NCBI GenBank assembly: GCA_965644265.1
Contig: OZ286459.1
Span: forward strand, 108,004,001-108,068,000
DNA from: Glycera tridactyla
Taxonomy: Eukaryota
DNA length: 64,000 nucleotides
Reading direction: 5' to 3'
The notes under the pieces are model-generated. The model had not been told where the DNA came from. It searched no databases and saw only the letters and a program-made list of their open reading frames with translations. Positions within the stretch are counted from its first letter, which is position 1. Each line of letters begins with the position of its first letter. The position numbers and the translations under genes are program-made. Below, piece after piece: positions 27,814 to 44,217 of this stretch.

Positions 27814-29071
27814 GCCTGCCACACACGCACGCACACACACACACGCACGCACACTTGTAGCGATAATAGTGATAGTGGTGCTTGTGAGTGTGAAGGGACC
27901 CAGTAATAATCATATCAATTAAAACCATGATCGCATAACATTGCTCCTATAGGAATTATCTTCATGCTAGTTGGTAGGGTAGAGTGGGCAGTATTTATAA
28001 CTAGAAACTAGAAGTGCACCATTTCGCGAAATGAAATAAAACATGAGAGCATGATCTTGATGAAGACAAGATGATGGTGGTGGATGAACAACCAACATAA
28101 GTGACAGACACTGGTACAAGGACGATTAGGACGATACTGCGATATCAAGCCACTATCGATAAGGAAAGATATGGTGTCTGTTAGTTATTCTCAACCAAAA
28201 CTAGATATTGAGATCAATACTCACTACTTAGGGAGCATTCACTACAGAGCAGCATTGGTGAGCAGATCAAACTGCAAATTTTGCTGGCCACTTTTGTCGA
28301 AGACAACAATAGAAATGTTAGTCTTGTATGCTCGTGTGCTGATGGTCCTGAACGTACAGCTATACAATGTTAGTCTTGTATATCAGAGTGAATGTACATG
28401 TGCTCACAGGCTTAACAAGTACACCTGTACAATCTTAATAGTGTATGTCAGCGTGATCACACATGTGCTCACACGAATACAAGGTGCGACTAGCTACAAT
28501 TTCATGCACTCTCCTCAAATTGCACTGGTGTGAATGTCTGCATACACTCGAATATTTTGAATAGGATTCACACTTTAGGAACATCTCAGTCGGAATGAGG
28601 AAGTGATGATGCATCGCATCAGATGATGAGGGATTTCTCCAAGGTTGTGACCACGATTGCAGGTTGTACCTGATTGGTTTGTCGTTATGTTGGTGTTCAA
28701 ACATGTCTAACTTGTCTTCCAGATCATGCACCATGGCGACAGGATGTGGGTTATTCAATTAACATAAGGTCAGAAAGCTTTGATTTGGACATAATCTGCT
28801 ACATTTCACAGTTTTGTACCAGTCATTTTCCCATGTATTCAGCCCAGATATAAAGGAGTGAGGGAATTCTCACATTTTCTTGATTTTTTTCTTGGATTTT
28901 CTTCTTATAAACTCCGTTCAATATCTATTGACATCCAGCCTGGAATTGTTGATTGATTGACATGAATCATGGACTGGTATTCAAGACACGTTCAGTCCTT
29001 TTCAGAATATCATTTGACCTATGATTGGTTGAGAATAAGACAACTTGTACACCTTTGGCTTTGAGACTTAC

Positions 29072-29190
29072 CCTCAACCAGTGATGTATATAGGGTAACA
29101 TTGGCTGCTTTGCGCCGCCCCGCGGGTAAACTTAAACCTATTGTCTCTAATTTTTCCCTGAGGGCCCGGCCACCATTTTTAGATTTTGCC
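29072..29190 (-). CDS. TFAP2: AP-2 exon 5c (third copy in transcript order, 119 nt)
   Basis: tttctcttgcag|G GCA AAA...GTT GAG G|gtaagt. Reads [39 protein letters not shown]; 34/39 identical to human TFAP2A exon 5 as recalled. Confidence 0.96.
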
Positions 29191-29243
29191 CTGCAAGAGA
29201 AAGCCGAAAACAGGAGTTGTAAATGTGTCTAGCGTTCTCTTAC

Positions 29244-29362
29244 CTTCAACCAGAGATGTGAGGAGAGTGACCGTAGCTGCCTTACGTCGGCCCGCTGGTA
29301 AACTTAAACCTATTTTCTCTAAACTGTCTCTTAGCGATCGTCCCCCGTCTTTATTTTTAGCT
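29244..29362 (-). CDS. TFAP2: AP-2 exon 5b (second copy, 119 nt)
   Basis: cattctcttgcag|A GCT AAA...GTT GAA G|gtaaga. Reads [39 protein letters not shown]; 32/39 identical to recalled human sequence. Confidence 0.95.
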
Positions 29363-29425
29363 CTGCAAGAGAATGGCAAGAAGGGGCTGGTAAGAGGCAG
29401 CAAATGGTAGGTGAAGCAGCCTTAC

Positions 29426-29544
29426 CTTCGACGAAAGACGTCAAAAGACTGCCTTTGGCAGCTCGGCGTCGTCCAGCCGGTACAGTAAAACCAACTCGTT
29501 CTAATTTATCGCGAAGACTTCCGATGTTACTTTTCGATTTGGCC
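29426..29544 (-). CDS. TFAP2: AP-2 exon 5a (first, most divergent copy, 119 nt)
   Basis: cttctcttttag|G GCC AAA...GTC GAA G|gtaagg. Reads [39 protein letters not shown]; 23/39 identical to recalled human sequence; no stops or indels. Confidence 0.88.
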
Positions 29545-31891
29545 CTAAAAGAGAAGTTAATAGATGACCTAGACTCGTGAAAAGATCACCTGGTGAAATG
29601 AAAAGAAGAGGAAAGTTGAAAGTCGACATGGTGTGCGGAGATGGCATTGTCGACATCCGTTACAAACATCCGACAGACTTCAAAGCTAAAATAGAAAGGC
29701 ACCAACAGACATTTAGTACTCAATGGCAATTCAACACTAGCAATAGACACACTTTTTATAGCTGATGACAATGCATTAGTCATAAACACTTGATCAAATG
29801 CAACTCGTTTGATTGTGTTCCTCCTATTCAGAGAGGGTACTTGGTGCGTATTGATTGCGGAATCAAACTCGATTGTTCCCAAGTGGGTTTGTCAGCAATG
29901 CACTTGGAATGAAATGACAAACAAATTCTTGAACACATTGGTTGATCTATTCATGCCATCTATTATTAATACATTGGGAAATATGGCCATGTGGCCGATC
30001 GTTCACCTTCAACTTGAGCATTAGAAATGAGAGTGACGGGGGTCTATTGTGTGCTTTGACCTTCCAGGGGTCAATTTGTCCTGGACAAAATTTCACCTGC
30101 CTTTGCCATCAAGCACAGGAAGTGGACTGTAAAAACCGCACTACGATACACTGATCACATTTCAGCGTACAAACTGGGTATGGACAGTAGAACTAACAAA
30201 TTTTACCCATCTTTTTTGCAAATTTCCATCCTCCACCCTCCCTCAAACAGAAGGGATTTTACAATTCTATAAGGAATATTTTGATATAAATCAGTAATAA
30301 ATCCATCCGATTATTGGGGGTTAATGCTCAAGGGGTTTTATATAATGGTGAGTGTGTGAGTACGGGGTCATAATGGCCACTCGACATGTTGCATCAGGGT
30401 TGTCAAGGGCTAGCAGAGCCTTAGTGTTCCCAAGGAGCACCAGGTTAAACACCGGACATTACCAATAACACAGAAACACAGAATAACGTAAATCTTAGGG
30501 GAAAGCATAAATATCATAATAACCGAAAAATCAATGAACTGATTTGCGAGAACATACACTATGTGTATACTCAAAGATCATGTTTGTGGATTTTCGGCGT
30601 TTTTGGTGTTTCCAGTGAGAATGGTCAAGTTCGTGTTTCGGGAATAGATCCTCAAAAGAACTTGAGGAGTGCCGACCAAGCACTCCAGATAATAGTGCTT
30701 ACTACAAAAGCGGTGTTTGCTACCTGAACGAGAACAAAAAGGAGACCGTGTGAGAACCACTGAGATCTCATTAAAACCCCTGCTGATGACCCCTTGTTAC
30801 ATGCTTAACCCCTCCCTGAGACATGCACATGCTGTTTATGAAGAATAAACATCCAAAATACCAATAGATCCTCGCTTCAGCATTTAAGAATATCCGCATT
30901 GAATTTGTATGGCGTCATCATACCAAAGTGGCGACGCAGTTCATGATGCAGTCTAAGGTCATCTATTGAAGGTCCACCAACTGTTCTTGAGTTGAAGGTG
31001 AAGCAAAAAGTCTCATAGAAGCCATAGCGAATACTACATAAATGTGGAAGGCTTATAGGACACATAGTTGAATTCCAAACTTAATGGGCATCAGCATCAT
31101 TCCATTGGTTTCCTGAATAGGAAAATGTATGGACATTTTAAACACATTGAAGCAGTTCCAAAGTGACAAATCATATTTTATGTGCCAAAGACCATGCCAT
31201 TCTATTAAAGTTTACTGAAATTCATGTGCCTTTCGAACGCATACTTTGCGGTTGTATGTTTCATACTTTGTGTGGCTTTTGGGGTAGATAATCGCGATGT
31301 TCAAGCATGCTAATCATCATGATAATTACATCACTCGGATATCTATATCGACCCTCTAGATTTGGGAAGTAATACAGATAAGCTTAGTGATTTGACCCCG
31401 AGGATGTTATGCGGCATCCTTCACTGGGAAGCTGTAGTATTGTCTGTTTCCGTGCAGCTCATCATGTTTATGAATCCACTGAGAATCCACTTACCGCCCT
31501 TCGCATTTAGACAAAGTGGAACCCATGGACCCATCCAGACTAATCTCTCGACGAAACACCATGATGTATTAGGGGCAACGATGACACCAATATATCAGTG
31601 GCCAGATGCAAATGCATCACTTATTCGGAAAATTGGCCTGTAATGAATGGGGTAGTGAAAAAGGAAGTTTGCAAAAGGAGGTGAATAACCCTGATACCCC
31701 ATTTAGCTTGCCAGCCTACTTGAATATCCACAATCACCAAATGATGCATGTCAGAATTGAGTGGGTTTTTTTCTGAGTACCAATCTACCTTGTATTTTTT
31801 CCTGCCAGATGTGTTACCTTTCACAGACAGCTATGTTTACCCCGTATTAAAACAAAGTACATTTCCGAAGAGTAGGTTTTAGTAAGTGCTC

Positions 31892-44021: not shown

Positions 44022-44217
44022 CGTCGTAAGACTCCTCCTAAGAGTGAAGCATTGAGGCACTCAGGTGGGGAGAGGCGCCGCTGTACTTCAGCTACGGTGA
44101 CTTTATACTTGGAGGTGGAACTGAGGAGAGAGAGTCGGCCAGGCACAGAACAGAAGACGTCTGTTGGTGTTGGCATCCCACTGATGACGATATCCTTCTG
44201 GTCGGGCTTCCGTATAC
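44022..44217 (-). CDS. TFAP2: AP-2 exon 4 (196 nt, phase 1 to 2)
   Basis: ttctgatagcag|GT ATA CGG...TTA CGA CG|gtaaga. Reads [64 protein letters not shown](R); the core is essentially identical to vertebrate AP-2. Confidence 0.98.

Follow-up and report, generated by a model that had tools for sequence, protein, structure and literature searches.

The minus strand of a 64,000-nucleotide stretch of the Glycera tridactyla genome (contig OZ286459.1, positions 108,004,001 to 108,068,000; referred to below as the window) was found to carry three tandem copies of exon 5 of an AP-2 transcription factor gene. One of them, exon 5a, is intact and strongly divergent in the loops that contact DNA. On balance we favour the explanation that 5a is a real, selectively maintained third alternative exon, whose isoform would read GCC with altered affinity or spacer tolerance. 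Among the points against this explanation, G262I and R263G fall in a human disease hotspot, and a 5a-like copy was found in no other sampled genome. Tandem alternative exons are a well-known device and are not new in themselves; what is new here is a third, strongly divergent alternative exon for the DNA-contact loops of AP-2.

An AP-2 gene with three adjacent copies of exon 5

We searched the 2.04-Gb genome in six frames with the Pfam TF_AP-2 model (PF03299); its matches on the window's minus strand make up the C-terminal portion of an AP-2 (TFAP2) gene (Table 1). Exon 4 matched model positions 1-46 (75 bits), exon 6 positions 81-136 and exon 7 positions 132-197, while positions 45 to 85 or 87 were matched by each of the exon 5 copies, with 46 bits for 5c, 45 for 5b and 31 for 5a. 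All exon 4-7 matches were above the cut-off of 23.4 bits, and this is the only intact AP-2 gene in the 2.04-Gb genome. The one other TF_AP-2 match in the genome, a weak one (L006, G000:C4:85821147-85821407, plus strand; 31 bits, model positions 13-102) lies on a different contig. It is intronless across the exon 4/5/6 boundaries, has a TAG stop inside and reads 'ANVT' in its exon-5 part as 5c does; in appearance it is either a processed copy that has decayed or a distantly related AP-2-like fragment.

Table 1. Features of the AP-2 locus, in window coordinates (TFAP2A, human residue numbering)
Feature	Position	Strand	Description
Exon 4 (common to the isoforms)	44022..44217	-	Loop1, S222/K226 region, R254; ends in CG, two bases of the R255 codon
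5a acceptor region	29545..29584	-	TATTAAC branch-point-like motif, pyrimidine run cttctctttt, AG; read directly
Exon 5a	29426..29544	-	119 nt, phase 2 to 1; divergent variant of exon 5; AP-2 residues 256-294 (C-terminal half of Loop2, helix alpha3, Loop3)
Spacer 5a-5b	29363..29425	-	63 nt; begins with the 5a donor gtaagg
Exon 5b	29244..29362	-	near-canonical copy
Spacer 5b-5c	29191..29243	-	53 nt
Exon 5c	29072..29190	-	most canonical of the three copies
Exon 6 (common to the isoforms)	18432..18573	-	start of the helix-span-helix dimerisation region
Exon 7 (common to the isoforms)	17762..18059	-	remaining helix-span-helix, C-terminus, TGA stop

Direct reading of the DNA showed that all three copies are 119 nt long and in the same phase, each with a pyrimidine run and AG before it and GTAAG after it. 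The splice sites of 5a read ctcttttag upstream and gtaagg downstream, so that the interval 29426-29544, proposed for it in a first-pass annotation of this DNA, is the exact exon on the minus strand, bounded by AG and GT. The exon 4/5 junction falls within the R255 codon (CG/G); because exon 4 ends in CG, each exon 5 copy opens with the last base of this codon. When the exons were joined by script, exon 4 followed by any one copy and by exons 6 and 7 gave a 250-residue open frame running to the normal stop. Skipping of the cluster, or inclusion of two or three copies, led to premature stops. Two properties expected of a mutually exclusive cluster are thus present: neighbouring homologous exons that agree in length and phase and have separate splice sites, and a frame that is kept by single inclusion only. 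5a, 5b and 5c are probably used one at a time. Exons 6 and 7 are common to the 5a, 5b and 5c isoforms, in agreement with the earlier proposal that 5a retains the dimerisation exons.

We have tried to detect the N-terminal AP-2 exons (Pro/Gln-rich activation domain, PY motif) upstream of exon 4, but tblastn with full-length AP-2 proteins found none on the minus strand between 44.3 and 64 kb. The window includes 2,957 N in masked runs, and the gene's first exons may be hidden in such runs, be situated outside the window or be too divergent for tblastn. Intron 6 contains a long imperfect CAC/CAT-rich microsatellite-like tract (about 18100-18290).

The spacer between 5a and 5b contains two stretches complementary to splice sites of the flanking exons. 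An 11-nt perfect complement, lying 7 nt after the 5a donor (29419-29409), faces the exon 6 acceptor (18575-18565) and was equalled in about 3% of shuffled spacers; as a hint only, pairing of this element could draw the 5a donor and the exon 6 acceptor together. The other stretch matches the exon 4 donor (G/GUAAGAGGC, the slash marking the junction) as a perfect complement over 10 nt (29398-29389 versus 44022-44013, minus strand) and precedes the 5b acceptor by about 25 nt. Matches of this length are no rarer in shuffles than chance allows (19-21%), though its location at a splice site is curious. Both stretches are taken as suggestive only. Both elements were sought in L013, a two-copy locus described below, and neither was conserved there. 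A search for RNA runs matching the exon 5 cluster found none. Four small runs of uncertain kind were found via exon 7 and the 3' UTR, and no contig from them aligned to 28500-30100 at 80% likeness. The runs searched neither show nor exclude expression of 5a or of any exon 5 copy.

Divergence of exon 5a and probable selection on it

The 5a peptide was aligned by HMMER with human TFAP2A (PDB 8j0k chain A, residues 255-295), and the alignment was gap-free from end to end. Residue numbering was fixed by R254, R255, A256 and K257 as given in PMC10450164. Counted by hand on this alignment, 16 of the 39 wholly encoded residues differ from the human protein. The differences cluster as NGGR to SNIG, LNL to FTV, RRK to RRR and NVT to KGS, with further E to D, D to E, K to R, I to V and L to F replacements, and include N260S, G261N, G262I, R263G, L274F, L276V, K282R, N285K, V286G, T287S and L292F. 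Both the count and the four clusters had been noted in the first pass and were reproduced by our translation and alignment. 5a has S260, N261, I262 and G263, and so carries Gly at the R263-equivalent position and, as had been proposed, Ile at the G262-equivalent position of the PMC10450164 numbering. The sites of branchio-oculo-facial syndrome (BOFS) mutations named in the first pass (R254, R255 and G262) are likewise found in the BOFS/NSCLP list of PMC10450164, which includes R254W, R255G/W and G262E.

The exon was also said to be intact, and we found no stops and no indels in it, with AKSK, PAGRR and LLTS.VE retained. Like the DBD-HSH structures of TFAP2A and TFAP2B (PDB 8J0K, 8J0L, 8J0R, 8J0Q), 5a has K257, A256, S258, K259, L265, R266, PAGRR and LLTS.VE. 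TFAP2A and TFAP2B are almost identical to each other in the exon 5 peptide, whereas 5a departs strongly from TFAP2A. The net positive charge of 5a is preserved, R263G being offset by N285K.

To test whether the changed residues are near-invariant, we took the exon-5 segment from 330 animal proteins and ORFs that our searches had found, which left 101 distinct peptides. At 10 positions (260, 262, 263, 272, 276, 282, 285, 286, 287 and 292) the residue of 5a was unseen in these 101 peptides, which upholds the earlier statement that near-invariant AP-2 residues are changed. The invariant residue is present in 5a at 255-259, 265, 266, 269, 273, 277-281, 283, 284, 288-291 and 293-295. Eighteen of the 23 internal positions conserved at 97% or more across the 101 peptides are kept, and four of the five changes at such positions are conservative (L to V, K to R, T to S and L to F).

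A HMMER search of 1.84 billion protein cluster representatives for a 5a-like exon returned canonical exons only, at most 68% identical. One HMMER match to 5a, P0002 (2040 aa), was rejected as an AP-2 protein since it is without any AP-2 segment. A word-index protein search limited to 5a gave no candidate from an index that covers proteins of 46-147 aa, which longer transcript-derived proteins could escape. No hit was confirmed in a metagenome scan with 5a-specific peptide patterns, and no close relative of Glycera tridactyla was found by a search with the 5b ORF.

Third codon positions differ by 0.67 between 5a and 5b or 5c, which is near saturation, while positions 1+2 differ by 0.26-0.32. 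Pairwise dN/dS is uninformative for 5a, given the saturation of synonymous sites and the constraint on the sibling branch. We used a branch codon model (GY94-type, F3x4 frequencies) with 16 exon-5 sequences of 39 codons from the window and its relatives. On the ML topology, omega was 0.24 for 5a and 0.04 elsewhere, so that the value for 5a is about six times the background. The likelihood ratio test (LRT) against omega = 1 gave 4.02 (p about 0.045), and that of omega(5a) against the background value gave 3.65, which is near-significant. When 5a was forced to be sister to 5b, omega was 0.25 and the LRT against omega = 1 was 6.95 (p about 0.008). The first-pass annotation had named neutral evolution (dN/dS near 1) together with a lack of expression as an outcome that would speak against its reading; omega(5a) was found to be about 0.25 and neutrality was rejected, weakly (p 0.008-0.045). 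We conclude that constraint on 5a, although relaxed, has probably been real during most of its history; 39 codons are modest evidence for this, with which the pattern of residue changes agrees. Constraint or function may have been lost recently, as the neutrality test rests on the same 39 codons.

Exon 5 pairs and other alternative exons in AP-2 genes of other animals

Protein searches returned ORFs that read two exon-5 copies through a short in-frame spacer. Such two-copy pairs were found in at least 8 loci from genomes and metagenomes (L008/L009, L010, L011/L012, L013, L019, L020, L036 and L099). They are like the window locus in involving the same 119-nt exon with short spacers and in having 5b-type and 5c-type copies that group across species, but they carry two copies where the window locus carries three. 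Of the six pair spacers measured from coordinates, the shortest was about 40 nt (L036) and the longest 69 nt (L013). A nucleotide tree placed the first copies of the various species with 5b (ultrafast bootstrap 48) and their second copies with 5c (79); the 5b/5c pair, common to the window, L008, L010, L019 and L020, therefore predates these species.

A third, 5a-like copy was found in none of the two-copy loci. L013 spans exon 4 to exon 6 and contains two copies only, and in L008, L010, L019 and L020 there is nothing 5a-like within 1.7-3 kb upstream of the pair (in the window 5a sits 63 nt upstream of 5b). Further metagenome loci had a single exon 5 copy within their flanks in 77 of 80 cases. 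The sampled relatives are all distant, with exons 74-80% identical and introns that are unalignable, and the absence of 5a elsewhere therefore shows no more than that it arose in, or survived only in, the Glycera tridactyla lineage. Two loci, L014 and L015 (Logan SRR24442795 and SRR24442794), contain a compact AP-2 gene with a single exon 5 and introns of ~80-180 nt between exons 4-7, as judged from tblastn hit coordinates. Their exon 7 is 82% identical to that of the window, and they presumably come from a small-genome relative.

Some of the pairs include an odd copy, far milder than 5a. The divergent first copy of L013 (6010-6132), a locus whose exon 4 is the closest to that of the window (92% identity), is 78% identical to 5b, versus 61% for 5a. 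It has Val262 and Phe274 where 5a has Ile262 and Phe274. The split of 5a and this copy from all other sequences received 80% bootstrap, a value that long-branch attraction could yield. Phe274 was also found in the odd copies of L036 (3164-3286) and L099 (885-1007), a position that is Leu or Met in almost all AP-2 proteins, and the L036 copy has Val272, as 5a does. The sharing of Val/Ile262 and Phe274, by descent or by convergence, suggests a recurring 'odd copy' type. As to the check for 5a-specific residues in relatives, proposed in the first pass, a hydrophobic residue at 262 recurs in L013 and Phe274 in L013, L036 and L099, while no clear 5a orthologue was found.

A literature search on AP-2 alternative exons, both general and annelid, found no description of exon 5 alternatives. 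A tandem-duplicated alternative exon in the DNA-binding domain is already annotated in RefSeq for decapod crustacean AP-2 (e.g. Penaeus chinensis X4 versus X2/X6). The crustacean case differs from the window in affecting exon 4 (the Loop1 side) and not exon 5, in belonging to another phylum and in its mild divergence. The alternative exon 4 of Penaeus chinensis reads SNSKYKVTVSELQ...ILGGILRR in P0230 versus ...LLGGVLRR in P0240/P0245. Five Amphibalanus amphitrite models (P0156, P0158, P0162, P0163 and P0176) contain the two exon 4 copies one after the other, apparently through mis-annotation of two alternative exons.

DNA contacts and the probable role of the 5a isoform

In the TFAP2A-DNA structures (Liu et al. 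2023, PMC10450164), each subunit of the dimer places its Loop1 and Loop2 in neighbouring major grooves, and the fixed Loop1-Loop2 distance acts as a ruler for the 3-bp spacer. Within exon 5 it is K257 that reads the bases, and binding is almost lost in the K257A and R254A proteins. R254, R255, K259, R263, R266 and K282 form part of a positive surface; A256, S258 and N260 make hydrogen bonds to the DNA backbone, which R263, K282 and N260 contact. The G262E protein binds about 7-fold more weakly than wild type (129 nM versus 19 nM; all from PMC10450164). We found that 5a keeps K257, the sole base reader of the exon, together with A256, S258, K259, R266, R280 and R281, and that R254 (exon 4) and R255 (across the junction) are unchanged in all isoforms. 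The backbone contacts N260, R263 and K282 are altered in 5a, as is G262, and Lys285 is gained.

Splicing of exon 4 to 5a and of 5a to exon 6 would produce a full-length AP-2 with unchanged Loop1 and helix-span-helix dimerisation domain. The replaced parts would be the second half of Loop2 (NGGR to SNIG), the start of Loop3 (LSL to FTV, K282R) and the turn that follows (NVT to KGS). As K257 and most backbone-contacting residues are kept and 260-263 are changed, we infer that a 5a subunit would most likely still recognise GCC half-sites, with the end of Loop2 predicted to be stiffer and differently shaped and the set of backbone contacts shifted. The result would be a lower or differently tuned affinity, or another tolerance for the half-site spacer or flanks, rather than abolished binding. 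A different spacer tolerance is to be expected because Loop1-Loop2 geometry is the spacer ruler in TFAP2A. Since every isoform would carry exons 6 and 7, 5a subunits are expected to dimerise with those of 5b and 5c, and one gene could therefore give three homodimers and three heterodimers with graded DNA binding. A more far-reaching possibility is that 5a and the milder odd copies with Val/Ile262 and Phe274 represent a second, selected DNA-binding mode of AP-2 with changed GCC half-site spacing or flanks, which we consider improbable.

Three other explanations of 5a have to be weighed. It could be an unused or dying duplicate, that is, a pseudo-exon that has lost its function and awaits a disabling mutation. 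Its presence in this genome only, among those sampled, the absence of RNA support, the unseen residues at 10 positions (including G262, R263, K282, T287 and L292) and an omega about six times the background, in a test that was near-significant, all agree with such a fate. However, the third positions of 5a are saturated and it nevertheless has no stop or indel, intact splice sites and pyrimidine tract, and 18 of the 23 near-invariant positions. Its omega of about 0.25 is below 1 in both tests (LRTs 4.02 and 6.95), and its substitutions at invariant positions are mostly conservative. We regard a dying exon as possible but unlikely. An isoform that dimerises normally while its DNA binding is poor or absent would act as a built-in dominant-negative, like the missense proteins of BOFS and Char syndrome or the human AP-2B splice form. 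The dimerisation exons common to the isoforms would allow this, and R263G, N260S and G262I should remove or disturb backbone contacts, G262E alone weakening binding ~7-fold (PMC10450164). AP-2 proteins (TFAP2B) with a defective DNA-binding domain behave in this way in Char syndrome (PMC3146506), and AP-2B is a natural inhibitory splice form (PMC7140685). Such a protein is nonetheless hard to reconcile with the retention of K257, K259, R266, R280 and R281 in 5a and of R254 and R255 at the exon 4 junction, given that mutation of R254 or K257 nearly abolishes binding, or with the unchanged net positive charge, N285K making up for R263G. Constraint at DNA-contact positions would be pointless in a non-binder, and a 7-fold reduction is modulation and not loss. 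We therefore hold a dominant-negative 5a to be decidedly unlikely, and a non-binding 'poison' subunit appears less likely than one with altered affinity or spacing.

It is also conceivable, at very low probability, that 5a is expressed and is biochemically equal to 5b and 5c, the time and place of splicing being all that sets the copies apart. 5a, 5b and 5c do have the same core recognition residues, but ten residues of 5a are unseen in other AP-2 exon 5 sequences and are concentrated in two DNA-facing loops, and an equal protein gives no reason to retain a third exon. We thus return to a maintained 5a that would still read GCC, with altered affinity or spacer tolerance. The AP-2B splice form (Buettner et al. 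1993, cited by PMC7140685) and the BOFS and Char proteins resemble this proposed isoform in that they are forms of AP-2 with altered DNA binding and a modulating effect on the normal protein. BOFS and Char alleles are single substitutions, whereas 5a exchanges an entire exon and leaves in place the residues that binding requires.

Ectoderm and neural-crest-type programmes have AP-2 factors among their key regulators. The 5a copy replaces a human disease hotspot (G262, R263 and neighbours) within what is probably a switchable exon, and leaves the base-reading lysine untouched. Provided that it is expressed, 5a reveals which Loop2 and Loop3 changes AP-2 tolerates and provides a natural system for studying how loop geometry sets affinity and half-site spacing. 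It would then also exemplify a transcription factor, encoded by one gene, whose DNA-binding surface has diversified through a choice between exons and not by gene duplication. If a second binding mode is true, one gene would give six dimers with distinct target repertoires, and vertebrates may do something similar with five paralogues.
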